From: Macrostomum lignano
Lineage: Eukaryota
Direction of reading: 5' to 3'
NCBI GenBank assembly: GCA_002269645.1
Contig: NIVC01000937.1
Location: 1-45,112, forward strand
DNA: 45,112 nt
Shown: piece by piece, positions 65 through 44,455 of the stretch
Layout: each line of letters starts with the position of its first letter
How positions within the stretch are numbered: the first letter of the stretch is position 1
Position numbers and translations under genes: made by a program
The notes under the pieces: generated by a model
Database searches by the model: none
Told to the model about the DNA's origin: nothing
Seen by the model: only the letters and a program-made list of their open reading frames with translations

Positions 65-1031
<967 letters not shown>

Positions 1032-7784: not shown

Positions 7785-8225
7785 GATGAGAGAGGAGACA
7801 AGAGGCAAGAGATAGGGTGAGAGAAGAAATAAGAGAGAAGATATGAGGAGAGAAGAGGAGAGAGAGGACAGAGAGGGGAGAGAGAAGAGGGGAGAGGAGA
7901 GAGGAAAGAGGAAAGAGGGGAGAGAGGAGAGAGGAGAGAGATGAGAGAGGGGAGAGAGGAGAGGAGAGAGGAGAGAGAGGAGAGAGAGGAGAGAGAGGAG
8001 AGAGAGGAGAGAGAGGAGAGTGGGGAGAGAAGGGAGAGAGGAGAGAGGGGAGAGATGAGAGAGGGGAGATAGGAGAGGAGAGAGGGGGAGCGGAGAGAGG
8101 GGAGAGAGGAGAGAGGGGGAGATGAGAGAGGGGAGAGAGGAGAGGAGAGAGGGTAGAGCGGAGAGAGGGGAGAGAGGAGAGAGGGGAAAGGGTGAGAGGA
8201 GAGAGGGGAGAGAGGAGAGGAGAGA
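7785..8225. repeat. Polypurine (GAG/GAGAG) low-complexity tract
   Basis: Almost pure A/G sequence. The LSPLSS ORFs are artefacts. Confidence 0.95.
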
Positions 8226-17237: not shown

Positions 17238-17522
17238 ATGCATCTTAGACTTCTGCTCCGGTTGCTGCTGCTTGCTTCGGTTTCTTTGTCCAATTCCTAT
17301 TGCACGACTTCGGCGAAATTCCACAAAACTGTTGGATTGGATTGAGTGCGACCCGAGTTCACCAACATCGTGTCGGGTCTGTGCACTCAACTTTACTGCG
17401 GCATTGCCTGCGCTAGGAAGGACAAGTGTCAGGCCTTCTCAGTGCTGACAGCTGGAGCCTGTCAGTGCAAGCTGTTCCTGTTCGATGCGTGCAGTCACCG
17501 TGTGCAGTCTGTGTTTTATTGA
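17238..17522 (+). pseudogene. Truncated PAN/C-type-lectin paralogue (signal peptide + PAN only)
   Basis: MHLRLLLRLLLLASVSLSNSYCTTSAKFHKTVGLD*VRPEFTNIVSGLCTQLYCGIACARKDKCQAF...HRVQSVFY*. In-frame TGA at 17343-17345 replaces a Cys. About 17396-17513 is near-identical to the intact copies. Confidence 0.8.
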
Positions 17523-18501
17523 TCCCCACTTGCAAGTAAATTTCAAGGCGATTTACTGAATTTTAAAGAAACTTGAAAGCGTTTTGTTCGTTTCTACCTG
17601 ATGACATCCAACAGTTTATGAGCGTACTGTTCTCAAATCAGTCGCATACAAGTTTATCAAATCGATCACTACCATGCTAAACTAACTCTGTGTTAAATAA
17701 AGCTGAAGTCTGAATGAGTGCTAAGCTCACCAAATACTTTTGTTGCTGAAAATCTTTTTGGAGCTTTCCTGTAAAGGAGAAAAGCACCTGTTCAAGCTTG
17801 CTAGTTTCATTGCACAGGATGTAAGTTTCTAAGGTAACTAAGAGCTGTGTAAAGTTGTTCTCACGACAAAGGCGAGGGATTAAATTCAGAAAAAGGTTTT
17901 ATTGGAATAAGATGCATTTCTGTTAGCGCATATCTAAGACCTCAGGAACAGAGCAGCTCAACAGTAAACACATTTGGCTTAAGCCAACCGACCCCTGGTT
18001 CGATTCCGTGCGCAAACACTTTTATTCGGGACTTGTGTACTTAAATTGGGCCTACAGGATGTCATTCGATTCACACCCCTGAGGCCCAACCCCCAAGACA
18101 CAAGGAGTGTAACTGCCTGACAATAGGAAAATCTGCTACTGGAAGCAAATACTGATGGATTTCTGTCGAGATTTTAGTCTTGCTCAGTAGCCCAAAAGCT
18201 TTTTATTTGAACGATAGTATCTGCTATCTAAAGCAGCAAGTAGACTGAACTTGCAAACTGAACCTGTGCACACATTGATAGAATTCCGTGACGGAGAGAG
18301 CTGCAACTAGCATTAACCGTCACCCAAAAAACTGTTTGCGATGCAAAGATAAAAGCCAGTCCTGCTTGCCATGTTCATACCAAGTCGTTTTACCTAATCT
18401 GGGCGAAAAACTTGACTTCTCTACTTCGAAGGCCTTCAACATTTATAAACTACACAAGCACTTCAAAATCTTTTGCAAGTCAACTGCGGTGTACAATTCA
18501 G

Positions 18502-19317
18502 ATGAAGTTGCGCCTGTTACTAACTGTCCTGAGCAGTACAGCATCATTGCAGCTGTTTGCATGGCTTCAAATCTTTTGGGCATCGACAGTGCTATCCAAA
18601 TCCTGCAGCGAACCCAAGGTCGCATTCCACAAGACCACCGGTGTGGACTGCGTGCGACCCGAGTTTATCCACATCGTGCCGGGTCTGTGCACTGAACTCG
18701 ACTGCGGCATTGCCTGCGCTAGGAAGGACAAGTGTCAGGCCTTCTCAGTACTGACAGCTGGAGCCTGTCAGTACAAGCTGTTCCTGTTTGATGCGTGCAG
18801 TCACCGTGTGCAGTCTGTGCCGAGCTGCACTCATCAGGTGACTGTGTATGTGAGGTCTCTGCCCGGCGTACCTCCGGGTCGCCTGTGTCCGTCCGGATAC
18901 GAGCACACGAGACATGGCACCTCGTACAAGTTTGTCATGGATAAGACGGTCACCTGGAACGATGCTCTCCAAAGTTGCAGCGCCGAGGCTGGACTGTCGA
19001 AGTTCGCGGACGCAATCGACTCCGATGAATCGAGCTACCTACTGAGTCTGCAGCACATTGTCATTCCAGAAGCCTCATCACTAAATTTTTTCCTTGGTGG
19101 CAATCAGACTGCCGCGTTTACTCCGAAGTCGAACGGTTGGTTCTGGGTTGCCTGCAACAGCTCCATCAGCTCAAGCATGTGGTACACTGACCAGCCCAAC
19201 CACGGCTTTCCAATACAAGGATGCACTGGCCTTTATAAAAAGTACGCGACAGGATTGGATGACTTTTATTGCACCGAAGCAATCCAATATATTTGCGAAT
19301 GCCAGTCAGTATTCTGA
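18502..19317 (+). CDS. Secreted PAN/apple + C-type lectin domain protein (copy A), intronless, about 271 aa
   Basis: Hydrophobic N-terminus. PAN-like LDCGIACARKDKCQAFS...C. CTLD with CPSGY, TWNDALQSC, FFLGG, WFW, WYTDQPN, C...LDDFYC...YICE. Confidence 0.85.
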   Translation: MKLRLLLTVLSSTASLQLFAWLQIFWASTVLSKSCSEPKVAFHKTTGVDCVRPEFIHIVPGLCTELDCGIACARKDKCQAFSVLTAGACQYKLFLFDACSHRVQSVPSCTHQVTVYVRSLPGVPPGRLCPSGYEHTRHGTSYKFVMDKTVTWNDALQSCSAEAGLSKFADAIDSDESSYLLSLQHIVIPEASSLNFFLGGNQTAAFTPKSNGWFWVACNSSISSSMWYTDQPNHGFPIQGCTGLYKKYATGLDDFYCTEAIQYICECQSVF

Positions 19318-20084
19318 AGATCTCTGACCAATTAGTAGAATATTTGAGAGCGTAGACAAAAACCCACCGTTTGCAGACGAAATGTCGAGAATATTTTCAC
19401 ACCCACGCAAAAAAATGACAATTCCGAATTCCAAATTTTCCACCGGGGTTGAAGCGCGGGGCTTTGAAAAGTGACCAGAAAAGACTAAGTATTGATAGAC
19501 ATGTACAGGATATAAAAGAATATCAAAAATGTCTTGATATTTCGGCCTAGATTCCGTTAATGCAACACCTTTCATGTAGTCATTTTCGGCCTGTCCCGTG
19601 TGCCTTTCTGGTCGACATTCTCTTTCCCTGTCTAAGCTTTTTTCTAGCTATCTGATAGATGAATTTATTCAAGCAAAACAATACGATCTAAATATTCATG
19701 TATTTTGATGAATAATTCTAATTCTAATTCTATTCTATTTCCCGAAGTTCTTTTAGCGACTCTTAAGTGACACATAGGCAAGAAAAATATATGGCTTATA
19801 GCAACCAGATCCTGTTAACCCAGTGCAGCGCATTCTGGTAAGCCTGATGCAACCATTGTACCAGAACAAGCTGACTGTCAGAGACCGTCTCCAAGCAGGA
19901 CGAACGTCGTGTCTTGATGCTTGTTTTTTAGTGTTTTCTAGTCAGGATTTCGTTGTACTTCTTGATGTAAGTTTTCAATTTGGAACATCTACATTTCGAA
20001 GAAGCACAGAGGCTGAAGAATTTGTGAGTAGAGTAGTCGCAAGTTTTTCTACACATGTCTTAACTGTTTTACGCAAATACAGTG

Positions 20085-20365
20085 CTATCTAAGTTTGAGT
20101 AAGACATTTGATTAGGGAGACACAAACTCGGGCATGGACACATCTATATTACTAATACTAGATCGGTATTCCTCAGAAGATCAAAGTGAGTCGTCCGCTT
20201 AGAAACCAAAGATGATATAGTTTGGGAGCATCTAATCAGAGAATACACATACACATGTACGGTAAATTAGCCTGATTTCAACCTCAATTGAAAAGAATTG
20301 TCAGTGAACACAAAAATCTAATATTGAATGCCAACACGTTTCGTCTAACCGACGTCTTCAAGGTA
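20085..20365 (+). mobile_element. Degenerate Penelope-like (GIY-YIG) remnant with an adjacent hammerhead-like motif
   Basis: Frameshifted reading resembling V(Y)KFE(C)KT(C)D..I(G)ET and IVWEHL at about 20085-20250. Minus-strand TTGAAGA-C-GTC-GGTTA-GAC-GAAACGTGTT at about 20333-20362. Confidence 0.35.
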
Positions 20366-20591
20366 GGTTAAAAATTGCATTAGTTTAACATAACAAGCAA
20401 TGCTTGTAACGAAAATTCTCGATCATAACATACATTCCAAAAGGTCCAGTTGATATGTCGCGGGCAGTTCAGTAAATAAAAAACAACGTTTAACTAAGCA
20501 AGCTACAGTGTAAACGTTAGTCGTTAGTCGCTATTAGTCGAACAAGTTAGTCGTTGGTTGCACTGATTAAGTTTATCAACTGATCCTCATT

Positions 20592-22038
<1,447 letters not shown>

Positions 22039-23194
22039 TTCTTGGCTGCATTTCTGATTGAGATTTTAACAGTGCTTTATATACAATAACTTTTGCATCC
22101 AGCCCATTTAACTATTTAAGCACTGCTCAAATGTTTAACAAGGGCCAACAATCATCTACTTAACTCAAGCCGTCCATTCTTTGTGCCTGCTTGTGCCTGA
22201 ACCTGAAGATTTGTCGTGCAGCGCTCTGTGTGGCATTTTAAAAGCCATTTATCGAAAGATGATGAATGATGCTAGGAATGATTTGATTAACAAAAATGTA
22301 TGGCTGGCTAACGGAGAAAATACACTTTGGAATCTTAATTGTTTCCCAAGTTTATTCTGATAAAATTGCTTTCAAACAAAAATCACTGCAAGCGTGATTG
22401 ATGGTCTCATGGTCAGCTCGTAGCTCGAATTACTTCATCATGTCTGAAGTTTGATTCTCATAAACTGATGTGAAACTCTCTTATTCTATTTGAACGGAAA
22501 CTCAATTTTACACAAATTAATGCAGCTAATTATATTAAAACACCATTCGCAACGAAAATATATATTCTTCTGTTTGAGCATTATCAGCAAATTTCAATTT
22601 TGACGCTGAAAATATTGAGGCGCGCAAAAAAACAAAATTGCGTAATTTGATATAAAAGTATCGAAATGAGCCAATGCTGGACAAACTCCGCTTAAAAACA
22701 CTTCGAATTAAAGTCTGTAGAGTTTTTCGAGTAGTCAAATAGTGAAGAGTATAACAAAATTACCTGAAATCCACAACTTTCACTTTGTGGGCTTTGGGTA
22801 GCAAAGTGGCTATAGCTCCAGTGTTTTGCGCTTCAACATTCTGTATCCAACCAATACTGCTATTCCTGGCAGCGGTAAAAGCTCCCGCGACCTGTTTGAT
22901 GAGTATAAACCCAAACACAATATCCAGTGTTTTCCGGGTCAGATTGGAGACATCAGTATTAGCGATAGAAAATGGTTGCCATCCAAAGGTCGGCGTTTAG
23001 TTCCACCAACAATGTTTTGAGGGAAAACACCAAGAAACTGTAACATTTAAAAGTTTACATACAGTTTTTATGCAACTAATCGACGTAAATGATCAGCATC
23101 AGCAACAAAAAACAAAAAACAAAAGGTCAGGGTCTTAAGAAGTCAGGGTCACAAGGTTCGCAAAAGAAGGACGCACCGCCCACCGAATCCAGGG

Positions 23195-23594
23195 TGCCTA
23201 CAGCGTCAGCAGCAGCACCTGCACCGGCTGTGGGCAGTATGACTCGGCGCGGATTATGTAGCCTGTCAGCTGGAGTCGCCGGCGGTGTCATATGTCGATC
23301 CAGATCAACGACAAGAGCGAGTCACTATCGTACAACCCACAGGCAGGCCACGCTATCCGCATCGAGTCGTACTGCCCACAGCCGGTCCAGGAGGTGCTGC
23401 TGCTGACGCTGCAGGCATACCACGGGGCGGAGGACAGGTGCACACTCAAGGTTGGCTCGTACGTCGATTGCCAGCTGGCTCACAACTGCTGGATCCGGTC
23501 TGGGTCAGTGGTGGCGTGGCCTACGTTCGCGCCTAGATCCAGAGGCGTGTTCATGGACAACTCCTTACTACTAATTTCTAAGAGAACCGAGTGA
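23195..23594. other. Inverted pair of an unidentified coding module; the + arm continues as a roughly 100-aa ORF (23292-23594)
   Basis: Arm 23195-23254 (minus: IIRAESYCPQPVQVLLLTL*) and arm 23355-23417 (plus: AIRIESYCPQPVQEVLLLTLQ). Related copies at about 26405-26515 (-) and 32068-32135 (+). Confidence 0.7.
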
Positions 23595-24412
23595 AGCGTC
23601 CTTCCCTTGGTCCATGGGCGCGATTTATGACTTTTAAGACCTAAGTTGCATCTACGAACATAGTAGTTTTTTAAATTTTACAACTATAACAGCGATCGTA
23701 GGCCGCACCGTCTACTCATAATGGCAGTGATAGCATTTTTCATAGCGTCGTAGCTATGTCCGATTATAACTGACTAATTGCGGCTTGGTCAGGCCAGGCC
23801 CAACAATATTCAAGCTACCTACTAACATTGACGCGTGGGGTAGGGACAAAAGAATGGAAATATTATTTTAACATCTGCTTAGCTAGGTGGAGAGGCATTT
23901 GCCCCACAGATACAAAAAACGTAGCCCAAATCGATTTAGGCAGTCAACCGTGTCAGGCCCTTCGTTATCGCTTCAACTTTGTGAGCAGCCGCCTCACTCC
24001 CAGCTCCGCTCCCGCCTCCTGCCACAGACAGCAGCCTCATCCATCAAAAATGGTTAGGAAATAAGCGGCAAAGGGTCGGAATTAAGCTGGCTTTGCTATC
24101 CCCGCAATAAGGATTAATAAATAATTCATGGGATGGCGTGGGATCCAATTATCGGCGCCAATAGAAAAAAATCGATGATCCCTGGAGTGGTGGTCGGAAA
24201 ACACTCGAAACCATGCAGTTTTGTTTTTAGCCTACGTGCAGTACAATCTATTGAGTATAAAATTCTTGCAATGAAGCAGAATTTCAGCTCTAATTATAAT
24301 TTTTAGCCCAAACTCGCGGGAGTAGTTGAAACCAGGCAGCAATACTTCAATTGACTCAGTAGCAGTCTATATTACCTTTCAAATTCGAACAACTTCGCGC
24401 TATCTGCGCATC

Positions 24413-25177
24413 ATGGAATTCTATATGGTAGCTTTTGCTCTACTTCTGGAACTCTTCTCCGCTTCAGCGGTGCTCTCTGAGTCGTGCGAATCCAAGGTCG
24501 CATTCCACAAGACCACCGGCGTGGACTGCGTGCGACCCGAGTTCATCCACATCGTGCCGGGTCTGTGCACTGAACTCGACTGCGGCATTGCCTGCGCTAG
24601 GAAGGACAAGTGTCAGGCCTTCTCAGTGCTGACAGCTGGAGCCTGTCAGTGCAAGCTGTTCCTGTTCGATGCGTGCAGTCACCGTGTGCAGTCTGTGCCG
24701 AGCTGCACTCATCAGGTGACTGTGTATGTGAGGTCTCTGCCCGGCGTACCTCCGGGTCGCCTGTGTCCGTCCGGATACGAGCACACCAAATACGGCACCT
24801 CGTACAAGGGGAGCACAGAGATCGCCTTCTGGTCGACTGCCAATCAGACCTGCAGTGCGGAACCTGGTCTGTCCAAGTTCGCTGACGCAATCGACCTTGA
24901 CGAGGTGGAGTACCTCCACTCGTTGAAGCAGCAGATCGGACTTGGATTCAGTTACTTTCTCGGCGGCGCTGGGAATCCAGCAAACGTGCCCTCCAGTTGG
25001 TTTTGGACTGGCTGTAATTTGCCTATCAGCGCCTCAGTCTGGCATGCCGGTGAGCCGAACGGGCCTGCTGAGTTATTCTGCGCCAACCTCTTCAGTGGAT
25101 TTTCTTCGGGAGGCATAGACGACTTCGAATGCACTGGAATGCATCGCTACTTTTGCGAGTGCCAGTCAGTGTTTTAG
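24413..25177 (+). CDS. Secreted PAN/apple + C-type lectin domain protein (copy B), intronless, 254 aa
   Basis: Signal peptide MEFYMVAFALLLELFSASA. Same PAN as copy A. CTLD with FWSTANQTC, YFLGG, WFW, WHAGEPN, C...IDDFEC...YFCE. Confidence 0.87.
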   Translation: MEFYMVAFALLLELFSASAVLSESCESKVAFHKTTGVDCVRPEFIHIVPGLCTELDCGIACARKDKCQAFSVLTAGACQCKLFLFDACSHRVQSVPSCTHQVTVYVRSLPGVPPGRLCPSGYEHTKYGTSYKGSTEIAFWSTANQTCSAEPGLSKFADAIDLDEVEYLHSLKQQIGLGFSYFLGGAGNPANVPSSWFWTGCNLPISASVWHAGEPNGPAELFCANLFSGFSSGGIDDFECTGMHRYFCECQSVF

Positions 25178-26404
25178 TCTGCAAATAATTGAACGAATAG
25201 CCGAATATTTATGTATGAACACCAAGGCTTGGATTTGCAGGAAACTTTTTAACTCGACTTTTCTACCGCAGTCTCTAGTTATCCTAACCATTTTTTTTAT
25301 TTTCTCTCACCATCTAGTGGAAAGTAATAGTGTGCGTCTTTTGCAGGTAGATGTGCATTGGTTATTTTCGAATTTTCTTTTCTACATCTAAAAGTACATA
25401 CCAGGTATTATACATCTTTCATGAAATATGTTTAGAGATATATAACTTCCTTGAAATTGTAACAGAAGGAACAATTTTTTGTTTGCAGCAATGCGAACTT
25501 TCTAGAAATGTTATGTCACAGACACAGACAATGGAACACTTTGCTGGTTTTTTAACAACCTTTAAATATATACTTGAAAAATGGCTTCTATCTTTCGAAG
25601 CAGCCGAACGCTGTTAGCGAGACAAGTTAAAACCATAAAAGTGTACTCGTACTCATTAAATCTACATGCAGCTTGAATAACTCACCCCCCCTCCCCTTAC
25701 TCGGATATCGGACAACAAGCTATTATTAAGCTCCAACATGCGGGTGGGAAGAGCAGCAACGCCCAGTCTAGTTAAGCTAAGATTAAGATTAAGTTACTCT
25801 ATGTATGATCTATAGGGGACGATTTTATTAACAAAAATGGTATTGCTTTGTTTATCTATCAAAGTAACTATACCATTCCTTACATTAGTAATTTACATTC
25901 ACGAAGCCGTAAATAGCTTTAGTATTTCGGTAAAATGCTCAAATTCATGCCAGGATAAATATAGTGAAAAAAATCTTTTTTTCCTGCACCAGATAATGAA
26001 CGAATGTGTCGTAACAGGCCCAATGCATTTTTCACTAAGAATAGTACAGCGTTATGATGATAACTAAAAACCACCTAGGTTCGAGTGCTTAACCTAATGC
26101 ATGCTGTGTGGCATGCTCACCTCCGAGTGAGTCCTTTACTTGACACTCTGTCGCCGTGGAGGTCTAGTCTGTTCATACAAGCCAGCCTGTTGCGCCGCCA
26201 GCGACTTCAGTAGGCAGGCCACATCATACGTACGCTCGTAGATTCGGTCGGCAAGTGCATGGGACCTACAAGAGCAACAACAACAAAATCTGCTACCCCG
26301 CATGCAAAGTCACAGTTAGAGCCGGGCGCGTCAGATGGCGCGCCGCAGAGTCTGGGAGCGAACCAAGTCCGCTTCGTTGGCTGTGTCGGGCGCCCCAGCG
26401 TCGC

Positions 26405-26515
26405 ACAGCAGGCAGTCCACGTATCGACGGTTTCGGGCCTGACCCCGCCTGAACGGGCCATGCAAGGTGAGCAGCAGGACGTCCTGAACAGGTTGGGGGC
26501 TACGTTTGAGCCTAT
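26405..26515 (-). pseudogene. Third, most diverged copy of the unidentified PQPVQxVLLLT module
   Basis: Minus frame HRLKRSPQPVQDVLLLTLHGPF...RYVDCLL aligns with the 23355 copy (..CPQPVQEVLLLTLQ...SYVDCQL). Apparent frameshift just upstream. Confidence 0.55.
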
Positions 26516-27180
26516 GCTATGCACCTCAACCTGTGAAGCGTGTTATGTCACAGTTTTCTGGTAATGTCCGTTTTGACGGATTGTCGTTTTTGTTGTTGAT
26601 GTTGGGATTCTCGTTCTAATTATGATGAAAGAATGAAAGCTGTGGAAAATATGATGGCTGTAGCTAGCAATCCAGCTATAAATGCTGTATATTATTGTAC
26701 TCATTTAAATCCATCAAGCTGTCAACGCTTTTGTTAAAACTTGAAGCTCAACACTTACCCCGCATTTCGCGTTCTTATTCATTGTTTTCAACAGTTTAGA
26801 ATAACACTCTATCAATTTTAATCCAGACCATTGCTTATCCTCATAGTATTGAAAAAAATCCTGAAAGAAAACCAGCTTTTTAGCAGAAAAGTAATTTTGC
26901 TTTTTGTATCTACCCTCGCTGTTAGGTCAATAACTATCGGAACACAAGTGAACAATAAGCATCTAGGATCTCACTCAGTATCTCAGTTGTCAGAAGGCAA
27001 CTGAGTTCGAGACATGAATGTCGAAATATTCGCAGTTGGCCATAGACTAAAAGTTCAAGCCTGTAAAATCTGACAAAATTATACTCATATTGCGCCTCTG
27101 TTTGCAAAAGCAGTTAGAAATCAAGAAGACAAGAAAAAGAATACTTAACGCTCTCAGACTTGTTGCATCCAAACACAAAA

Positions 27181-28545
27181 ATGCGCGAGTGCATCTCAAT
27201 TCACGTCGGTCAGACGGGAGTGCAGATAGGCAACGCCTGTTGGGAGCTCTTCTGTCTTGAGCACAGCATCCAGCCGGACGGTCTGATGTTGCCTGGTAGA
27301 GAAAAATCCGACGATTCTCAATCGTCTTTCTTCTCAGAGACCTCGTCTGGACGATACGTGCCTCGCACAGTGTTTGTGGATTTGGAGCCAACCGTCATTG
27401 ATGAAGTCCGATGCGGCACCTACAGGCAGATGTTTCACCCGGAGCAGCTCATCTCGGGCAAAGAGGATGCGGCCAACAACTACGCCCGGGGACACTACAC
27501 AGTCGGCAAGGAGGTGATCGGACAAGTGCGAGAGGTGATCAACCGTCTAGCCGAGAACTGTTCAGGCCTGCAGGGCTTCCTTGTGTACCACTCCTTTGGC
27601 GGCGGTACCGGCTCCGGATTCACGTCGTTGCTGATGGACCGCCTGGCGTCGGAGTACGGCAAGCGAGCCAAGCTGGAAATCGCCGTCTACCCGTCGCCGC
27701 AAGTGTGCACCGCTGTGGTGGAGCCATTCAACGCGATTCTGTGCACACACGGAACACTGAGGCACTCCGACTGCGGAATGATAGTGGACAATGAAGCCAT
27801 CTACGACATTTGCCGAAGAAACTTAGACGTCGAGAGGCCAACTTATACAAACTTGAACAGGCTGATTAGCCAAGTCGTATCCTCCATAACCGCGTCGCTT
27901 CGGTTTGACGGCTCAGTAAATGTGGACATCAGCGAGTTTCAAACAAATCTGGTTCCTTATCCAAAGATTCACTTCCCTCTTGCTACTTATTCACCAATTC
28001 TTTCAGCAGAGAAGGCGCATCACGAGCAGCTCACAGTTAAAGAGATTACTAACTCGTGCTTTGAAGCTAGCAGTCAGATGGTGAAGTGCGACCCTCGGCA
28101 CGGAAAGTACATGGCCTGCTGTCTTCTGTACCGCGGCGACGTCTCCTCGAAAGACATCAACGAAGCGATTCAGAAAATCAAGACTAAGCGCGAAATACAG
28201 TTTGTCGACTGGTGCCCCACAGGCTTCAAGGTGGGCATGAACTATCAGCCGCCAACGACGGTACCTGGCGGTGATCTGGCAAAAGTTCCACGCGCAGTCT
28301 GCATGCTGAGCAACACCACCGCCATCGCGGAGGCCTGGGATCGGCTGGCGTACAAGTTCGACCTGTTGTATTCCAAGCGGGCGTTTGTACACTGGTACGT
28401 AGGGGAAGGCATGGAGGAGGGCGAGTTCGCCGAGGCCCGGGAAGATCTTGGCGCCATGCAGAAGGACTACGAAGAGGTCGGAGTAGACAGCGTCGAGGGA
28501 GAAGAGGAGGAGGTCGAGGAAATGGACAAAGTCGGCGATGACTGA
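27181..28545 (+). CDS. TUBA: Alpha-tubulin, divergent, intronless, 454 aa
   Basis: [69 protein letters not shown], acidic tail. Confidence 0.98.
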
Positions 28546-29199
28546 AGCGGTGCTTCCATCTTCGTAAATATCTCTATGCATACTTTGAACTGTATTTTCC
28601 AGCAATTATCTAATTAATTATCATGCAGACCGTTATGCTTATTTTTATTCCAAAATTTGCGTAGCGATGATGCAAGAAGCTGGCAGATCATTTGCTACGG
28701 CGAATCCGTATTTGTATTGGTTGGCCATAAATGAGGCCCACACTTGCATTCATGAATTAGTTTCGGTAAAGTTTTGTTACTGCATTTTGACAACTACAAA
28801 GGAATTTTATTTGCAAGTCAATAAACCGGTATCATATTAATTTATTCTCGCACACCTTTTTTGTCTTCGTATCTGTCATTTCGACCGGCTCTCCAAGCAC
28901 AGCGGAAGGCGAAGTTTGAACAAAATCTTGAGTGCTTATTGTAATGAAAGAAATTTTTAAAGTCACTTTCATCTGGCAGGCAGAAAACGAGACAGGTTAC
29001 GCCCAAGGACCACTATCAGTATATCCTTGGATAGCAGGGTCCTTGGTCCTTGGTTACGCCCTTGATAACTGCACGAAGTTTGATTGAAGTTTTGTTAATA
29101 TTTGTCTTGTAGCAAACAGCTGAAAATGCAGTGTGTTTTTTTCAGCGGGAAAAATACTTAAATGTACAAACGCTCGTTTGACTATAGAGTAGACCAACA

Positions 29200-29475
29200 T
29201 GGTGTCTGTGCACTCTTCGATAATGTAGCATTGTCTGCGCTAGGAAGGACAAGTGTCAGGCCTTCTCAGTGCTGACAGCTGGAGCCTGTCAGTGCAAGCT
29301 GTTCCTGTTCGATGCGTGCAGTCACCGTGTGCAGTCTGTGCCGAGCTGCACTCATCAGGTGACTGTGTATGTGAGGTCTCTGCCCGGCGTACCTCCGGCT
29401 CGCCTGTGTCCGTCCGGATGCGAGAACGCGAGATACGGCTCATTGTACGTGTATATTCAAGCTTGTCAAGGATGA
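29200..29475 (+). pseudogene. Internal fragment of the PAN/C-type-lectin cassette
   Basis: About 29237-29420 is near-identical to copies A and B. It then degenerates (GCENARYGSLYVYIQACQG*). The 5' flank is a decayed version of the 17.3 kb copy. No signal peptide. Confidence 0.8.
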
Positions 29476-29836
29476 GCTGATCGCATAGGATGTCTAATAG
29501 TATGGCTTACTTGTTGTGGCTTCAAAGTGTGCTTACAGCGTACTCATTAGTTGACTTGACTACTAAAAAGAATAAACTTAAAGCCAAGGAAAATTGTTTC
29601 AGTTCGCTAGAATAAGCCAAAGCGTGACCAACTGAATCCAGTATTGCTATAGTATTTCCGCACTCTAATTTTGCATACATGGGCTGGCTTTTCGACTCGA
29701 TGTGGCCACTCAGAAGGCTGCACCAGAGTCCATATAATTGCTTCCTGAGCTCCGAGAGCAGATAAATTCTAACTGAGATAGGTCGTTTGAAACTAAAGGG
29801 AAATTTTGCAGTCATTTTTGTTAAAATTGTCGCTGC

Positions 29837-30706
29837 ATGGCTGACACTCTGGTGAAAGTTGGTCTCGCCTGTTTACTATTTTCGTTGGTCCTCGTTGCCG
29901 TTCTTTTGCCAGCATGCTGCTTGATGCGTCGCAGGCGCCGGGCTCAGTCGCAGCAGCATTTGCAGCAGTCCGATGAGCAGCAGCGGTCGGTCTGGCCAGG
30001 CCGCGTGTCTGTGCTGGCAGCCGGGGCGCTGCTATCTGTTGGCCTGCTGGACATGTTCCCGGATGCGGCCGAAGAGCTCAAACCGATGGGCAACGCCAGC
30101 CGGACACTGGCGCACAGTCTAGCCCTGGCCGGACTGTCTCTCGTGCTGGTTGTTGATCGTCTTGCTTCGGCGCGCTTCAGCCGCTCTGCTCTGCTGGCCA
30201 CGGCGCTGTCCGTTCATTCTCTGTTCGAAGGCGTAGCGATGGGGGTCGCACCGCAGCCAACCAAACTGGCCGCCTACTTTGTAGCCATCGCGCTGCACAA
30301 ACTGGTGGTGGCCGCCAGCCTTGGCATCGAGCTGGCCACCTCCAGCGTACCCATCCGCAACCTGCTGGCCTGCGCGCTCGGCTTTGCGCTCGCCAGTCCC
30401 GTTGGCATAACTCTCGGACTGCTCCTGACGACCAGCCTCGAGTCCCGACCGCTCTCTGCCGGACTGGCTAGCGGAGTTCTTCAGTCCTTGGCTAGCGGCA
30501 CTTTTCTCTATGTGGCTCTGTTTGAAATCCTGCCGCGAGAGTTTGGCTATTGCTTTGAGTCTGCCGAGTCGGATGGACCCGATGGCACTGAGCAGGGCAG
30601 CGCCGAGCCGGAAGGCCACCGACACGGCAAACTGCTGTTCCTGGCACTCGGGTTTGTTGCCGTTTCATCCTACGAGCTGATGGAGCGGGCGATACTGACG
30701 CCGTAA
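29837..30706 (+). CDS. ZIP (SLC39, ZIP1/2/3-like) divalent metal transporter, intronless, 289 aa
   Basis: AAGALLSVGLLDMFP, TM4 ALSVHSLFEG, TM5 IALHKL, ASPVGI, ASGTFLYVALFEILP. AATAAA at 30776-30781. Confidence 0.92.
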   Translation: MADTLVKVGLACLLFSLVLVAVLLPACCLMRRRRRAQSQQHLQQSDEQQRSVWPGRVSVLAAGALLSVGLLDMFPDAAEELKPMGNASRTLAHSLALAGLSLVLVVDRLASARFSRSALLATALSVHSLFEGVAMGVAPQPTKLAAYFVAIALHKLVVAASLGIELATSSVPIRNLLACALGFALASPVGITLGLLLTTSLESRPLSAGLASGVLQSLASGTFLYVALFEILPREFGYCFESAESDGPDGTEQGSAEPEGHRHGKLLFLALGFVAVSSYELMERAILTP

Positions 30707-31125
30707 CTTCTCTAGTAGTTTACGAGATTTTTTCGAGCGTACAAAAGATTTCGATTTCATCCCAGTTTGTATTGAAATAAACTCTCAATTGAGTTGATAA
30801 TCTTTTATGCTGGTCAATACGATTAGTTACTAAGTTTTGTGGTAATTGTAACATTATTTTAACTGCCCTGCACTCTTGGGTTATGTTGTGATGTATTTGC
30901 CTCTTTTCTTTGAGAGTTATAAAATTTTTGCAAGCACTGTACTAAGTCGAATAATTTAATTTTTAATTAAACAATTTTTGAAATCGGATCAACTGAAGCA
31001 TAAAATATAAGGAAACCAATTACAGTTTTATTCTAACATAGGACAGAGCACCAGATAAACTCTTCAAATACACAAGTCCGCAAGTACACTATGCGAGAGT
31101 CCTAATGCCCGCGGCAGCTCAGCAC

Positions 31126-31638
31126 TCAGGGGAAAGCCTCGTGGTCGAACACGTACTCTCCGATTCCGGTGCCCACCCTATTGAGTTGCGTGATGAAGGC
31201 GGAGATCTTGGCAATCGCGTCAACCTGCTCGCCGAGGAACTCTCCCTCTAGGAAGTCGGTGAGATGCGCGTCATCGTGTTTCGAGGTGACCTTGTGCAGG
31301 TCCAACAGGCTCTGGTTGACGTCCCTCTCCAGCTGCAGCGCGTCCTCCATCGCCTCCAGCATGGAGCCCCAAGCGTGCTTCTTCGGCCTGTTCACGTTGT
31401 CCAACACGACGGAGCCGCCTCGCTCGTTGATCAGCTTCATCAGCTTCTCGGCGTGCTCTCGCTCATCCGAGGACTTCTTGGCGAAGTAGGCTGAGATGCC
31501 GGGCAGGGCGACATCGTCGCGACTAAAGTAAAAGCTCATGCTCTGGTAGGTATACGACGCGAACAGCTCCATGTTCACTTGCTTGTTCAGCGCCGCCTCG
31601 CTCTCCTGGTGAAAGTTCTGTCTGATTCGGCTGCTCAT
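31126..31638 (-). CDS. Cytosolic ferritin, heavy-chain type, intronless, 170 aa
   Basis: RIRQNFHQESEAALNKQVNMELFASYTY, RDDVALPG, EREHAEKLM, LERDVNQSL, DFLEGEFLGEQV. Ferroxidase ligands appear present (Asp at the H-chain E61 position). Minus-strand AATAAA at 31027-31032. Confidence 0.97.
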   Translation of the reverse strand: MSSRIRQNFHQESEAALNKQVNMELFASYTYQSMSFYFSRDDVALPGISAYFAKKSSDEREHAEKLMKLINERGGSVVLDNVNRPKKHAWGSMLEAMEDALQLERDVNQSLLDLHKVTSKHDDAHLTDFLEGEFLGEQVDAIAKISAFITQLNRVGTGIGEYVFDHEAFP

Positions 31639-32067
31639 GACTGCCGGCTCTGCCGGGCGAGACTGGGTTTTGATTGACTTTCTTGCGCTGTCTGCAAACA
31701 GCTGTCGAATTTATGCGCTCGGCTACGCAATGATCAGTCGTATTCGAGCCGAGCTGAGGCGCTTAGAATTATCATCACCAAGGCCAATGAAAAAAGTTAA
31801 TCTCAGAAAGATGCTCAAACTGATCACAACTTGAGATGGGATGTGCTGAACAATAGAAGCCCTGGGTTATTATCTGTCATTACATTCATTATCGATTAGT
31901 TCAACTAGTTCACTCATGCCTCACCGAAATAGTACATTTCCACAGCTTTCTTCGAAGATCTGATGTAGACTTGCGGTCGACATGGCCCACTGGGGACTCA
32001 GTCTAACCGCCGAGCCGGCCTAGTCCGCCCATGAGACCTCAAGCTAGCCGGCCAACTAGCCAGCCAA

Positions 32068-32135
32068 ATCATCCGCGCCGAGTCCTACTGTCCGCAGCCG
32101 GTGCAGAATGTGCTGCTGCTGACGATGCGCAGGCA
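32068..32135 (+). other. Fourth copy of the unidentified module
   Basis: Frame IIRAESYCPQPVQNVLLLTMRRHPG, bounded by stop codons. Lies upstream of and divergent from ferritin. Confidence 0.7.
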
Positions 32136-32359
32136 CCCTGGCGCAAACTCGGCGTTTCGTCGAGCTGCCTGCTGGCTGACGCGGGCGCCCGGATTCGGTC
32201 GGTGACACGGCCTGTGTTTGCGCCCTAGCCAAGAGGCGCGCTGTGACTCTGACTATGTTTTATAAGTCTAACTGACAGCTTATTTTGTTGTTATTATTGT
32301 TGTTGTTATTTGAGTGTTTTAGAGAAGCGAAAATTCAAAACAACCAGTTCGGGTGAATT

Positions 32360-32732
32360 TTAAGGTAAGGGTTGACCACTATATTAAAATGATAAAATAT
32401 GCCAAAAATGTACGGAACTCGAAGGTATTTGACAGGATTTTTCCTGGGTGGGTGCACGTGACGGACCATAATATCTTCGATGTATAGGTCTTCAATGCCT
32501 ATAGATAGGTGTGTATAGTTTCATCCGGTGTTAGGGTGACCACGGGGAGACCGTGACGCAACATATTACTTGCGTTGTACTCCCACCAGAGAACGCAGCA
32601 TAAATTAGAGCTTTAAAATCTCTGGTGCCTTGTGATCTCCTATTACTCCTAAGGACACTATGCAGAGTCAGATAAATTTTTTTTCAAAAAAAATTCAGAT
32701 GAGTTTTTAGTCACTGACCCTTCCCCTCTTAA
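32360..32732. mobile_element. Possible small non-autonomous DNA transposon bounded by TTAA (Kolobok/piggyBac-like MITE)
   Basis: TTAA-GGTAAGGGTTGACCACTA ... TAGTCACTGACCCTTCCCCTC-TTAA. The terminal inverted similarity is only partial. Confidence 0.3.
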
Positions 32733-33483
32733 CTTTCAAAGCACAGATAGATCTGTTAGGGAATTGATCACCTTTGAGAGATCTTTACAGTGTGCTATGT
32801 ACACAGCTAGTGCTCACTTGTCAAATGAGTATATATCATACAACAAACAATTCAAAACTATATAATTCGCCACTTGCTTTGCATCGTCGTTCAAAAGGCC
32901 TAATAATTATGGCAAATTTCTGTATACCTGCTCAATGGTGAGCATATCAGTTTGGCAACTTGAAGCGTCGAAGCGTTGGAGTAAAAAGCACTAATACAGC
33001 TGTCCATAATGGCTGACAGTAATGTAATATTAAAAATAAAGCAATAAATTGTAGTAAGAGAAAATCTGGCAAAAACCAGAACATATTCTTTGATTTTAAA
33101 CACCTTTTGTTATACTCTTCTTTTCCAAGAATAATTATTTATAAGAACCTATTTGACTGCACTAAATATTTAATATATAATGTTTCAGATCGATCGAGAA
33201 AATTTTTTGAAATTTTGTGAAAATAAGCCTTCACATTATTATCCACTTTATCAATTATCAATAACACTTATCAATAACTCTGATATTTTAGGCGTTATAA
33301 CAAAATTATCATTACTTTTTGACTGACCCTCGTAGACATGGCTACCTTGTCTCTAAATGTGGCATTTTGTATTATAAGTAATTCGTTTCAAATCTATTAT
33401 TGTATTAGTATTTATGAATATGATTGATTAAATATGATAATTTATATAACTATAGCTTTTATATTGCTAATTACTGGTAGAAA

Positions 33484-35280
33484 TAGAGTAGATATAATAA
33501 AGATTCAATGTTATGGCCATCTTGGTGAGTGGCCATCTTGGTCTTATACCATTATATCAATAGTAGTTTAAAGCTCTTAGGCTCTATCCTGCCTTTGATT
33601 AACAAATATTAAAGACCATTATCCTAAGTCCTAGGTTTTTTGTGCCAAATGGTTGCCATGATACCTCAAAATTTTGTTTGGCACCTTGAATTAGACCTAT
33701 ATTGCCAAAATGGCACCATAAATTTTTAGGCCTGCTGCTGCCAAGAAATTAATGTACTTTTATAATAGAGTAAAGATGACATCATTGAAGTGTAGTGTAT
33801 ATATTACTGCATAGGTAATATATTATCTCAATACTTATATAGGAAAAAGTTGAATGAGTAATAATAAGTAATATTAATGTCTAACAATATTTTACATTTT
33901 TTCTAGGAATTTTCAGGATTAATGATAAGGATTAATATAAAAAATTAGCATTGAATAATTAAGTTAAACATTTTGATGAGTACTAATTGGCACCCTGATT
34001 TCTGATTTAGCACCCTGATTTTGGATTAAAGTGCCAAATACCACTCAATTTTTACAAAAAAACTAGTCTAAGTCTAAGATGATTAAAGATTTAGTAGAGA
34101 AAAGTTAAGCCTTGTAAACTCTTTATGAAGTAATATAGTATATAGTATAAAGATAGTGATATATAATATATCACTTCTTTTTGAGCATTTTGATTTTATA
34201 AGAGTTTAGAATTTTAATATCATTAATTAATGGCAGTTGTTATTGTTACGGTGACTGTATAAACAACAAAACGGTTATTTTTATGGTTAACGCATAAGAT
34301 ACTATGTGGGCCTATGGTCTTTACTTAATGTAACCATATAAATAGCAAAACTTATTTTTATGGTCACCATAGATGGGAAGCAAAATGGCTATTTTTATGG
34401 TCATGTGGAAGAAATTTCTGTTAAATTACAAGGTAATAGTAACAATTACCTAAAGTAAGCTACCATGACAAGAACCACTAGAAGTTACCATGGTATTTAT
34501 TAATAAAACGTTTCTTTATTTTTTAAATTCAACTATCATAGTATTTGCATAGCAAGTTCATCACTTCATTTAGATGGTACTTGTTTTAAGTGTTAACCGT
34601 AAAAATAACTGTCTCGCTATTTATACGGTCACCATAACAATGACAACTGCCTAATTAATATAACTTTTACTAATGTCATTGAAACTAAAATCTAGTAATA
34701 AATATATTTAAAAAATACTTTTATCACCTATTGATTAATGATAAAATTATATAACTTATCTACAAGACCAGAAACCATAGTAAAAAGTTGTTAGTCTTTA
34801 GTTACTTGGGTCAAAATTTAAGGTAAAAAAAGTAAAAATTCCAAAAATCTATTAAACAAAATGTTAATATTTTTACTTTCATCTTTTATATTACTAAGCC
34901 TATCTGACTTATAGAAGTTGAAAAAGACTATAAACTCCATGTTTATATATTCAAATTTGATAATTGATAGAAGTCTTAAGAATCCCAAGACCTATAATTA
35001 TTGAATTATTAAAATCTTGAACTTAAGTAGTATCCAAAGTGCCAATTTGGTATCTTAGATCCAATGTTAGAATGTCAAAATTAAGGTTAATATATCATGA
35101 TGCATGTTATGATACAACAAACTTAGTCTAAGACTATGCAAAATGTCCAATTTTTCATTTTAAAGAGAGCACTTGGGCTGATGGAGAAAGGGCAGAGAGA
35201 GTAATGTAAATAGTATAAATAGTATTTACAGTGTCTTAATTCAACCAAAGATGGCTATTCTAAATTTTCAGATGTACTCT
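33484..35280. mobile_element. AT-rich, old foldback/MITE-like element with nested inverted repeats
   Basis: Abrupt shift to very AT-rich, ORF-free sequence. Degenerate terminal similarity (AGAGTAGAT..GGCCATCTTGGT vs the reverse complement of ACCAAAGATGGC..ATGTACTCT). Internal arms of about 70 bp at 34222-34291 and 34592-34659. Confidence 0.45.
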
Positions 35281-35378: not shown

Positions 35379-38300
35379 ATGGGGGCCGCTCCATCTGCTC
35401 TGACTGACTCGAGCTCCGCTTCGTTAGGACAGTTTGGTTGCCATGGCAACAGCTCAGAAAAGAGCCAGCCGTTGTCGACTGGCTCGGCGAATTCCTTTGC
35501 GCCGTCCGGTCACAGCCGCCAATCGTCGTCTTCCTCGTCGGCGACGGCCCGTCTGCAGCAGACGCTGAAACGGCGAGTCGCCTGGCTTCGGCGACGATCT
35601 TCGCCGGATCCGGCCAAGCAATTTCGCGCCTTCATCGCCGACTGGAGCTCCGCCGATCTGCGCGTCTTGCTGGACGAATTTGAGGCGCTGCACGCGCTTA
35701 AAGATGCTCATCTGGGCGCTGCGGCAGCGAGGCCGCAGTGCAGCAGCCTGTGCCAGGACCTCGGCTGCCTGCTGCGCACCGGGCTCGGCTCCGACGCTCG
35801 CCTGATCCTGGGCGGTGTCGCCTTCCCTGTCCATCGGGCGGTGCTGGCCGCTAGGAGCAACTTCTTTGCTAGGCTGTTTGCCAACGGCGAGGACTATGAC
35901 TCGGCCGCAACTGGGGGCGCTGGTGAGCTTTTTTGTGTTCCGATGATAGGGTGACCTTTATTGACCCCGAATACAGTGACCCTAATTGACCTGATTACAG
36001 GGTGACCCTAATTGACCCCGATTACAGGGTGACCCTAATTGACCCCGATTACAGGGTGACCCTAATTGACCCCGATTACAGGGTGACCCTAATTGACCCC
36101 GATTACAGGGTGACCCTAATTGACCCCGATTACAGTGGCCCTAGGTGACCCGATTATAGGTTGACCTTAATTGACATCTATGACAGTGACTCCGATTACA
36201 GGGTGACCCTAATTGACCCCGATTACAGTGGCCCTAGGTGACCTGATTACAGGGTGACCTTAATTGACCCCGGTTACAGGGTGACCCTAATTGACCCCGC
36301 TTGCAGGATGATCCTAATTGACCCCGATTACAAGGTGACCCTGATTTTAGCTGATAACAAAGTGAATTTGATTGACCCCGCGGGACTCCAGCTGGGTGAC
36401 TTCGAGCTGTAACGAGGATTCAACTTGTACAATCGTCAAAACGCTTGTACAAGAATCTGATATAAAGGACATTAACTGTGCACTCAACGCCACCACCCCA
36501 TTCCATAGATTACCCACTGGACCTGTGCGTCCCTGGCGGCCTCGACCCCGAGCTGCTCCGGGCCCTCCTGGCCTACCTGTACTGCGGCGAGGTCAGCCTG
36601 GCCCGCCTCAGCGCACCGGCCACTGTGGCCGCCCTTTGCCACGAGCTCGGCGCCCCCGGCCGTCTGTCCGACGATTTAGCCCAACTGTTGGACACCGGCC
36701 ACCTGGCCGACTGCGTGCTAATATTTGAGGAGGCCGAACCGCGGGCGAGGCGAATCGAGCTGCCCTGCCACCGGGCCCTGCTGGCCTGTCGATCGCCGTT
36801 CTTTGCCGGCGTTGTCGAGAAACGCCTGGCCGCCGCCAGGAGGCACCGACGCCGGCGCCTTGTCCGCTGCGCGGTTCACGGCGGCGGTGACGGCGTCGGC
36901 GATGCTCAACTGGCGGAGCCGCCTTTGGCGCTGGTGCTCGACGAGGCTGTGCTGCCGCGCCGCCTGGCGCCGGCTATGCTGACCTGCCTGTACACCGACC
37001 GCCTGCCCGACTGCCTGGCACTGCGGGTGAGTCTTTGTTTTTGGCTTTTGAAGTTGTCTTTGTTTTGGCTTTTTGGGTAGTCTTTGTTTTGTCTTTTGAA
37101 GTAGTCTTGGTTTCGGCTTTTGAAGTAGCCTTGGTTTCAGTTTTTGGAGTAGTCTTTGTTTTGTCTTTTAGAGTAGTCTTTGTTTTGACTTGTGAAGTAG
37201 CCTTGGTTTCAGTTTTTGGAGTAGTCTTTGTTTTGTCTGTTGGAGTAGTCTTTGTTTTGCATTCGGGTAGATTGGGTTGCTCGTTCCGCAGTTACTTAGC
37301 CGGTAGTATCAGTGACCCTCTGTCTGCTCATGCCCAGGACCTGATGGATCTGCACGAGATTGGCCGTTTCCTTGAGCTGCCCTGTCTCACCCGGGCTAGT
37401 GAAGACCTACTGGTGGAGTCCCTGTGCCCGGACACCCTGGTGCCTGTCCTGGACTGGTCCGGCGCCGGCACCGGTTCTGCCTGGGTCCACCGACAGGCGC
37501 GCCTGTTCCTGTGCGAGGAATTCGCCGCGCTAGCCGTCCAAGCGCCGCGTGTGCTGACTCAGCTGAGCCGCCGGGAGCTGCTGGCCGCTCTGCGGTCCGA
37601 CTTTCTACAAGCGGCCGAGTCTGACGTGCTGAGCGCCCTCATCGCCTGGGGCGAGGCGCAGGTGGCCGCCAGGGCTGCGGAAATTGTCGCGGGTATGTCT
37701 ACGGGATGGACCCTGGATGCTGTGGTTTGGTGACCCTAAATGACCCTGGGATGATGTGGTTCGGTGACCCTAATTGACCCTGGGATGCTGGGTTCGGTGA
37801 CCCTAACTGACCCTGGATCTGGGGTTCGGTGACCCTAACTGACCCTGGGATGCTGTGGTTCGGTGACCCTAACTGACCCTGGGATGCTGTGGTTCGGTGA
37901 CCCTAACTGACCCTGGGATGCTGGGGTTCGATGACCCTAATTTACCCAGGGATGCTGTGGTTCGGTGACCCTAATTAACTCGAAGATTCTCGGGTTTTGA
38001 AACCCTAATGGACCCTAGGATGTCGGAGTTCGGTGACCCTAACTGACCCTTGAATGCTTAGTTTCGGTGGCTCTAATTGACCCTATGGCTCTGCGAGGTT
38101 TCTGTGACCTTAAATAACCCCAGGATTTTATGGTTCGGTCACCCTAATGACCCGAAGATTCCCGGGTTTGATGACCCTAACAGACCTTAGGATAGAATTT
38201 CAATGGTTTGTATGACCTTAACCATAGGCAGACGGATGGCCGTTTTCGTCCATTCTGTCTACCTCCAAGCTAGACGGCATAAAATCAATCTCTATGGGCC

Positions 38301-43541: not shown

Positions 43542-43689
43542 CTGGCTGGCTGGCTGGCTGGGTGGGCGGAGCCTTGGCTTTGCTGCGCCCGAATAGTTGC
43601 GCAATTTTCAAACTGTAACATTTCACTAGCACTGCAGAGATGCTCTCAGCGGAGGACAACACGTTGCTTCCTGTCATCGATTCATCTGT

Positions 43690-44455
43690 GTTCCTCTCTC
43701 CTTTCCCTCTCCCTCCTCTCTCCTCCTTTCCCTCTCCCTCCCTCTCTCCTCCTTTCCCTCTCCCTCCCTCTCTCCTTTCCCTCTCCCTCCCTCTGTCATT
43801 TCCCTCTCCCTCCCTCTCTCCTCCTTTCCCTCTCCCTCCCTCTCTCCTCCTTTCCCTCTCCCTCCCTCTCTCCTCCTTTCCCTCTCCCTCCCTCTCTCCT
43901 CCTTTCCCTCTCCCTCCCTCTCTCCTCCTTTCCCTCTCCCTCCCTCTCTCCTCCTTTCCCTCTCCCTCCCTCTCTCCTCCTTTCCCTCCCCCTCCCTCTC
44001 TCCTCCTTTCCCTCTCCCTCCCTCTCTCCTCCTTTCCCTCCCCTCCCTCTCTCCTCCTTTCCTCTCCCTCCCTCTCCCTCCTTTCCCTCTCCCTCCCTCT
44101 CTCCTCCTTTCCCTCTCCCTCCCTCTCTCCTCCTTTCCCTCTCCCTCCCTCTCTCCTCCTTTCCCTCCCCCTCCCTCTTCCTCTCCATCTCCACCCTCTC
44201 TCCCCCTCTCACTCCCCCTCCCTCTCTCCTCTCCCTCTCTCCTTTACCCTCTCCCTTCCCCTCTCTCCCCTCTCTCCCCCTTTCTTCCTCTCCCTGTCCC
44301 CCGTCGCCCTCCCTTTCCCTGTCTCTCCTCTGCCACTCTCCCTTCCCCTCTGCCTCTCCCCTTCCCCTCTGCTCTCCCCTTCCCCTCTGCCTCTCTCCCT
44401 TCCCTCTGCCTCTCCCCTTCCCTCTGCCTCTCTCCCTTCCCCGCCTCTCTTTCCT
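43690..44455. repeat. Polypyrimidine (CT-rich) low-complexity tract
   Basis: Nearly pure C/T with an internal CCTTTCCCTCTCCCTCCCTCTCTCCT periodicity. The ORFs over it are artefacts. Confidence 0.96.

Follow-up and report, generated by a model that had tools for sequence, protein, structure and literature searches.

The window analysed here is the entire 45,112-bp contig NIVC01000937.1 of assembly GCA_002269645.1, part of the Mlig_3_7 assembly (NIVC00000000) of the free-living flatworm Macrostomum lignano (PMC5730564). Scattered between its genes are short stretches that spell out, more or less intact, the peptide IRxESYCPQPVQxVLLLT...YVDC. This motif is the conserved C-terminal segment of the open reading frame (ORF) of a long interspersed nuclear element (LINE), an ORF that specifies both an apurinic/apyrimidinic-like endonuclease (APE) and a reverse transcriptase (RT). 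The stretches themselves are almost certainly decayed, 5'-truncated 3' ends of a LINE of the RTE clade, made up of the last ~55-95 codons of the ORF, the 3' untranslated region (3'UTR) and a (TTG)n tail.

The initial annotation of the contig had suggested instead an undescribed family of small proteins, an exon captured and spread by a transposon, or decaying paralogues of a host gene. A transposon is indeed the vehicle, but what it carries is its own coding sequence, not a host exon. The small-protein family and the host paralogues both fall away, since the module is the C-terminus of a LINE APE+RT ORF. A match to a transposable-element ORF was the outcome that the annotation had itself named as telling against its proposal, and LINE ORF relatives are what the searches returned. 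The feature is real but ordinary: genomic debris of a known kind, and not a new protein family.

Homology to a LINE open reading frame

The degenerate pattern GARTCNTAYTGYCCNCARCCNGT matches the window three times, at 23223-23245 (-), 23364-23386 (+) and 32080-32102 (+), where 0.02 matches are expected by chance and none of 100 shuffled sequences reaches three. The fourth occurrence, which the initial annotation had placed at about 26405-26515 (-), is diverged and is recovered by tblastn (26498-26334 (-), 71% identity to residues 95-149 of P0001, E 2.6e-22); the motif is thus present at all four of the places originally noted. P0001, an ORF of 149 aa, comes from the metagenome contig L003 (963 bp) and ends in ...LQLAGHIIRAESYCPQPVQEVLLLTLQAPYRRGQAQTRRFVDCLLADAGAPD..AFVRAQALKRAL and a stop codon. 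The DNA 5' of P0001 reads LGYADDLALLSS, the catalytic YADD box of reverse transcriptase, and the same box lies 5' of the module in L003, P0007, P0017 and P0020.

A search with P0001 returned 17 further proteins. One of these, P0017 (LQGDTLAPFLF...LGYADDLALLSS...), matches the Pfam domain RVT_1 at 37.4 bits, above the cut-off of 29.6; P0007 reaches 28.6 bits against the same cut-off, and P0004 has a weak match to DUF6451. With a profile of the family (alignment A2), 8,900 representatives are found at E <=1e-3 among 1.84 billion. The long relatives carry Exo_endo_phos, the APE endonuclease, and RVT_1, and in them the module lies ~50-70 residues from the C-terminus. Those of full length, 938-1042 aa, end in ...GHxIRAE(S/A)YCPQPVQEVLLLTLQAPYRRGQARTRRYVDCLL...RAL and a stop. 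P0026 (938 aa), which ends in ...RLRLAGHIIRSEEYCPQPVQRVL...NREI and a stop, scores 35.9 bits with Exo_endo_phos and 94.6 bits with RVT_1; the RVT_1 scores of the full-length members run from 94.6 to 119.5 bits. Exo_endo_phos or Exo_endo_phos_2 exceeds the Pfam cut-off in P0026, P0160, P0162 and P0124, and precomputed PF03372 is recorded for most of P0167-P0189. A search with P0026 brings up some two dozen close relatives, P0170 and P0187 included, 47-79% identical and mostly full-length, and among solved structures the best matches are to human LINE-1 ORF2p (E 9e-23) and R2 (range, E 9e-23 to 2e-16).

The organization of the intact element can be read from outside contigs. L008, a 3280-bp contig of a Logan assembly, opens with a leader of 78 nt; its one ORF, of 1,042 aa, occupies 79-3207, and the 3' region that follows, 73 nt in length, ends in (TTG)7. 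Four other contigs of the family end in TGA, CGCTGCC..., a 3'UTR of 30-70 nt and (TTG)4-6, beyond which the flanking sequence is unrelated. The distance from the stop codon to the (TTG)4-7 repeat is 30-75 nt in L003, L004, L005, L007 and L008, and likewise in two of the copies in the window (C and D, below). In L009 the ORF occupies 509-3325, and nothing more than a called, uncharacterized ORF of 115 aa stands ahead of it. The full element is therefore ~3.3 kb in length, with a short 5'UTR, a single APE+RT ORF, a 3'UTR of 30-75 nt and a (TTG)n tail. The relatives L003-L009 come from environmental metagenomes (ENA/JGI and Logan contigs) and reach at most 89% nucleotide identity to copy A of the window, which suggests that Macrostomum-like animal DNA was present in those samples.

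Anatomy of the copies

The 60-nt module that caught the eye of the initial annotation is real, but at each place the repeat extends well past it, over 100-310 nt, and the module is simply where preservation is best. The window was scanned by nhmmer with a DNA profile to which only outside sequences contributed, namely the final ~470 nt of five of them. All four copies originally noted were recovered, A to D, together with a fifth fragment, E1; a probable sixth piece, E2, came from local alignment. The frames of copies A, C and D are bounded by stops and lack starts, as had been noted, and frame inspection bears this out.

Copy D (31999-32308 (+)), at ~310 nt, is the longest. It gives the strongest match (32006-32301 (+), E 4e-48, model positions 160-479) and aligns by blastn with L003 602-916 at 73% identity over 326 nt. 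It reads RRAGLVRP, a stop, and then DLKLAGQLASQIIRAESYCPQPVQNVLLLTM.., and its frame is broken by at least two frameshifts and by in-frame stops. The homologous stop codon, TGA, stands at 32244-32246; the 3'UTR follows, and after it a (TTG)n/(TTA)n tail at 32283-32308. Copy C (26271-26500 (-)) is the best preserved. Its match covers 26500-26271 (-) (E 6e-35, model positions 250-478), and in a six-frame hmmsearch its i-E is 7e-24. Here 57 uninterrupted codons, SPQPVQDVLLLTLHGPFRRGQARNRRYVDCLLCDAGAPDTANEADLVRSQTLRRAI, run up to the family's own stop, TGA, past which come ~45 nt of 3'UTR and a (TTG)4 tail at 26275-26286.

Copy B (23337-23575 (+)) is a 5'-truncated 3' end that reads AGHAIRIESYCPQPVQEVLLLTLQAYHG...SYVDCQL, after which the frame shifts (..GVAYVRA-stop-IQRR). 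It is matched by the profile over its whole length (E 7e-29, model positions 213-437) and by tblastn at 23343-23537. The (TTG)n tail is not recognisable in copy B, where the profile match ends at model position 437. The YVDC that the initial annotation had found in two copies is that of B (SYVDCQL) and C (RYVDCLL). Copy A (23100-23296 (-)), also 5'-truncated, reads RRRLQLTGYIIRAESYCPQPVQ-VLLLTL and then a stop, and has suffered a one-codon deletion, an in-frame TAG and an internal deletion of ~80 nt. Its main match lies at 23290-23188 (-) (E 9e-24, model positions 195-300); tblastn extends over 23296-23171, and 94 nt of it are 89% identical to L003. Its end is made up of residual 3'UTR and a degenerate tail rich in T and G (23100-23126), the tail remnant being weak in nhmmer (model 405-475, E 0.6).

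Fragment E1 (26120-26230 (+)) is an older and more decayed piece of the LINE, SLLRRQRLQ-stop-AGHIIRT, the stop being TAG. It corresponds to the codons just 5' of the motif (nhmmer E 4e-6, model positions 130-235; blastn to L003 575-683, 66% identity; six-frame hmmsearch i-E 0.006), and its end borders the start of copy C. Fragment E2 (26509-26604 (+)) is tentative. It appears to be the extreme 3' end of the LINE, with the last of the ORF, then the 3'UTR, and at 26587-26604 a tail rich in TTG. The nhmmer scan of the window does not report it; a local alignment to L003 829-930 scores 24.4, against 11.3 +/- 2.1 (maximum 19.9) for 200 shuffles.

Full-length proteins of the family match the window only by their last ~85 residues, and the remaining parts of the LINE ORF were not found anywhere in it. 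The 5' ends of the copies vary (model positions 130, 160, 195, 213 and 250), and the 3' part of the element is common to them: C, D and E2 extend through the 3'UTR into the tail, A keeps a weak remnant of the tail, and B has none. The window contains no (TTG)n other than those terminating C, D and E2 on the 3' side. A common 3' end combined with differing 5' ends is the signature of 5'-truncated LINE insertions.

A weak likeness to the LINE C-terminus was also seen at 6339-6494 (-), in DNA of 71% GC (tblastn E 0.002-0.003). It was rejected as an additional copy, the profile giving an i-E of 0.37 and nhmmer no match, and is either a very old remnant or chance.

Selection on the source, decay of the copies

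The initial annotation had read into the differences between copies the imprint of selection on a protein. That imprint is there: among four intact ORFs of the family (L003, L004, L005 and L007), pairwise dN/dS (the ratio of nonsynonymous to synonymous substitution rates) is 0.13-0.29, and core differences at codon positions 1/2/3 number, for example, 1/1/7 and 2/0/8. In active elements, purifying selection acts on the C-terminal segment. In the window copies themselves, the claim that differences are mostly synonymous holds in part. A third-position excess is evident in the core of D versus B (7/5/11) and D versus A (6/3/9), but it is absent from B versus A (6/4/3) and from D versus B downstream of the core, where the counts are 10/14/8 and indels break the frame. 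Nor are the modules intact and conserved by codon, as had been supposed. Outside the core, what is shared is a repeat at the level of DNA, alignable over ~215 nt between B and D and ~160 nt between D and C, with broken frames and with indels that are not multiples of three. All of copies A-D and E1, save C, carry frameshifts or stops.

These two patterns, selection in the relatives and decay in the window, fit together. Many of the differences between copies look synonymous because they arose in selected master elements and were frozen at insertion; the third-position excess in the window copies is weaker, or absent, because neutral changes were added afterwards. Quartet counts group A with L003 and D, not with its neighbour B (5 versus 2, and 7 versus 1, sites), and the copies in the window descend from different sub-lineages of the element.

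How the copies would have come about

Target-primed reverse transcription (TPRT) is the established mechanism for LINEs of the APE type, and we infer that each copy arose by it, and independently of the others. The endonuclease of the element would nick the genomic target DNA; the RT would prime on the nick and, beginning at the (UUG)n tail, copy the element RNA in the direction of its 5' end. The enzyme would usually stop early, and it is because of this that most insertions would be limited to the final codons of the ORF together with the 3'UTR and the tail. Copies of this kind would be non-functional from birth. Those in the window would stem from different sub-lineages, having diverged while the source ORF was held under purifying selection, and would since have decayed neutrally, accumulating frameshifts, stops and deletions.

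Assignment to the RTE clade

RTE elements are 3.2-3.9 kb long and are characterized by one ORF that combines APE and RT and by a 3'UTR that is very short and ends in simple repeats; the genomes that harbor them contain mainly 5'-truncated copies of the end of the RT ORF and the 3'UTR (PMC1291365, PMC2887409). The element described here has one APE+RT ORF (L008, 3280 bp), and a short 3'UTR followed by a simple repeat, with no poly(A). For comparison by sequence we used 36 reference RT domains, drawn from the RTE, CRE, R2, R4, L1, CR1 and Jockey groups in three alignment blocks (PMC2887409, Additional file 7). When six full-length members were compared with these by blastp, the top 6-7 of the 36 references were all RTEs, at 65-91 bits—BmRTE-d05/13/14/15/17, BovB/BDDF and HmRTE-e01—and the best non-RTE reference scored no more than 67 bits. 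The C-terminal profile (alignment A2) matched all nine published RTE/Rex3 C-termini (Additional file 2; E 1e-17 to 6e-5), and 45 shuffled controls gave no match. The alignment with McRTE-a01 spans the module itself: RLRWYGHVVRSDE--NSVVRTALRL...RPKRRWMDRI versus RLQLAGHVIRAEAYCPQPVQEVLLLTLQ...RTRRYVDCLL.

Like RTE-1 of Caenorhabditis elegans, BovB/BDDF, SR2, SR3 and Perere-3 of Schistosoma, and the lepidopteran BmRTE and HmRTE elements, the M. lignano element has one APE+RT ORF, is ~3.3 kb long, and has a very short 3'UTR ending in a simple-sequence repeat. It differs from them in the repeat, which is (TTG)n in place of their A-rich tetramers or pentamers or CTT/GAA repeats, and in two family-specific cysteines (YCPQP and VDC) that are not conserved in the RTEs compared. 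Rex3 of fish, which is RTE-related and was compared by its C-terminus alone, is matched by the profile at E 4e-7, below most of the RTE references. Human LINE-1 ORF2p and R2 have a homologous RT core and the logic of TPRT in common with the element, and belong to different clades: LINE-1 has an ORF1 and a cysteine-rich domain at the C-terminus, and its tail is poly(A), and R2 has a restriction-like endonuclease and is site-specific. Literature searches turned up no named RTE family in Macrostomum.

Alternative explanations

Several points weigh against interpreting the copies as truncated RTE insertions. Membership of the RTE clade comes from best-match scores, not phylogeny, and is well supported by sequence comparison, though not formally proven; the reference RT segments are partial and noisy from optical character recognition, and I, LOA, R1, Tad, L2, Proto2 and others are absent from the set. 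No target-site duplications were found for copies A-D, and around E there is only a weak 11-nt match, with one mismatch, that lies away from the boundaries. Convincing duplications are not to be expected of old copies, and the individual insertion events stay unproven. The evidence, moreover, covers 45 kb and one 98%-identical duplicate (below). Finally, the copies are all very short (no more than ~310 nt), which would also fit a non-autonomous derivative. Could they, then, be short interspersed elements (SINEs) with a borrowed LINE 3' end, and not truncated autonomous LINEs? Five or six copies of 95-310 nt, with 5' ends within ~120 nt of one another in element coordinates, would suit such an element, and RTE-derived SINEs have been mentioned for flatworms (PMC1291365). 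The 5' ends nonetheless differ, at the five model positions given above; the sequences 5' of the copies are unrelated, with no common non-LINE head; a pol III-type head (tRNA, 5S or 7SL derived) is lacking, as scans of the window for tRNAs and with Rfam gave no match; each copy is collinear with the LINE ORF up to its own 5' end; and truncated RTEs are easily mistaken for SINEs (PMC2887409). We regard a SINE-like element as very unlikely.

Far less probable still, to the point that we attach next to no weight to it, is a host origin, in which the 100-aa ORF discussed below and its paralogues would express either a family of small host proteins or a LINE C-terminal domain that had been domesticated. 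That ORF does begin with ATG, and copy C does retain 57 intact codons. Against this, there are in-frame stops in A, D and E1, and frameshifts or deletions in A, B and D; the N-terminus of the 100-aa ORF has no relatives, and its C-terminus lies outside the frame of the family; the copies bear a LINE 3'UTR and tail, which a host gene would lack; and the relatives in the databases are all LINE ORFs or chimeric models.

Clustering of the fragments

Truncated RTE copies remain the explanation that we favor, and their arrangement deserves comment. A (-) and B (+) lie head-to-head, 40 nt apart, in a cluster at 23100-23575. In the second cluster, 26120-26604, C (-) sits between E1 (+) and E2 (+), and C and E2 abut head-to-head, with their (TTG)n tails pointing outward. 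C may have inserted into an older copy, of which E1 and E2 would be two parts. Possible sources of the clustering more generally are nesting, local rearrangement and double priming.

The head-to-head pairs A/B and C/E2 might also be local inverted duplications of single insertions, a reading that would alter the number of events, not the identity of the sequences. A and B do form an 83%-complementary inverted repeat, 78 nt apart, and their flanks, outside the LINE parts, show a weak collinear similarity. The flank score of 16 is not significant, however (shuffles, 11.4 +/- 1.8, maximum 19); the quartets place A with L003 and D instead of B; and C and E2 are strongly diverged from each other. 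On balance we consider such duplications unlikely, albeit the least unlikely of the alternatives. In twin priming, the inverted arm holds sequence from upstream of the breakpoint, and has no tail. Twin priming was rejected for A/B and C/E2: the two arms of each pair correspond to one and the same 3' region, and a tail or a remnant of one survives in A, C and E2, three of the four arms.

There is a slim chance that the clusters are non-random. This RTE family might, by self-targeting, favor integration in or beside its own earlier copies, or 'double TPRT' might occur, in which both ends of one staggered break would prime RT from the 3' tail of the RNA, a process distinct from classical twin priming. 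Less likely still, a remnant might have been co-opted as a promoter, or a small ORF, for a neighbouring gene.

The 100-aa ORF and genome annotation

The ATG-initiated ORF at 23292-23594 (+) is an incidental frame: it opens with ~17 codons of spacer that does not belong to the LINE, continues through copy B, and closes out of frame with respect to the LINE ORF, the frame of the family switching inside it. Among 5.8 billion proteins its sole relative is P0001, with 63% identity over 46% of the query. It has no Pfam match, and P0001 alone likewise yields nothing meaningful, the link to RT becoming apparent only through longer relatives.

The outcome is a clean negative: an apparently unknown, selected protein family in intergenic DNA turns out to be the expected footprint of 5'-truncated LINE copies. 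In annotating M. lignano, the copies, and with them the 100-aa ORF, belong among the LINE/RTE remnants to be masked, not among the genes. P0018, P0170 and P0187 are UniRef proteins of M. lignano itself. In these and in P0020, gene models fuse a LINE fragment to host-like sequence (Rab3GAP-named, coiled-coil, 7tm_1 and HSP70 domains), and all four are likely to be annotation chimeras; UniRef, that is, already holds chimeric M. lignano models with such fragments (P0018, P0020-like, P0170 and P0187). The (TTG)n tail, for its part, accounts for some of the TTG microsatellites in the M. lignano genome.

Genomic context

LINEs make up 1.66% of the M. lignano assembly (Supplementary Table 4), and duplicated, non-repetitive blocks of at least 95% identity total 180 Mb in Mlig_3_7. 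One such relationship involves this window. Contig NIVC01001639.1 (L001, record 69573-90937) is ~98% identical to window positions 17589-34231, over 16.7 kb, with the same genes and with every LINE copy at the matching place. It is an allelic or homeologous duplicate of that part of the window, in agreement with the known redundancy of the assembly and the neopolyploidy of the DV1 line from which it derives, and at ~98% identity it is uninformative on constraint.

The LINE remnants are located in the spacers that separate the genes of the window. By Pfam, these genes comprise a fibrinogen-C-domain exon (20595-21053 (-)), an alpha-tubulin (27181-28542 (+); 27181-28545 as ORF), a ZIP transporter (29837-30703 (+); 29837-30706 as ORF) and a ferritin (31129-31638 (-); 31126-31638 as ORF). 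The last three each consist of one uninterrupted ORF, and the tubulin, judged by eye, is somewhat divergent from canonical alpha-tubulin. An exact search with the alpha-tubulin product leads to contig NIVC01000937.1 itself; one with the ferritin product returned no match. The initial annotation had set the copies upstream of fibrinogen-related-domain (FReD)/lectin, tubulin and ferritin genes; they are intergenic, as it said, but nothing in the analysis ties them functionally to the FReD, tubulin and ferritin neighbours. Two paralogous, cysteine-rich ORFs of ~290 aa, 18412-19317 and 24326-25177, have no Pfam match at E <=1e-3; they are lectin-like in appearance, again by eye. A 300-nt segment that is part of both recurs in two fragments, making four occurrences of 69-98% identity in all (17302-17601, 18608-18907, 24486-24785 and 29129-29428).

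No known RNA gene or tRNA-derived SINE was found in the window, the scans of its whole length with Rfam (gathering thresholds) and for tRNAs being empty. Tandem arrays abound, in keeping with the 13% tandem-repeat content reported for the M. lignano genome. They lie at 1-1000, 2470-4935, 7780-8235, 35912-36380, 37011-38190, 41050-41770, 42508-42772 and 43685-44450, and the periods seen in the contig are 8, 39, 41, 43/36, 9-16, 27, 24, 34, 20, 30 and 26 nt. The purine-rich (GAGAGG-like) sequence of one block, 7.8-8.2 kb, reappears in complementary form at 43.7-44.3 kb. Lastly, a microsatellite of the (GTCT/GACA) type at 21765-21900, in the putative upstream exon region of the fibrinogen-domain gene, gives rise to long artificial ORFs (CLSVCLSV.../DRQTDRQT...).

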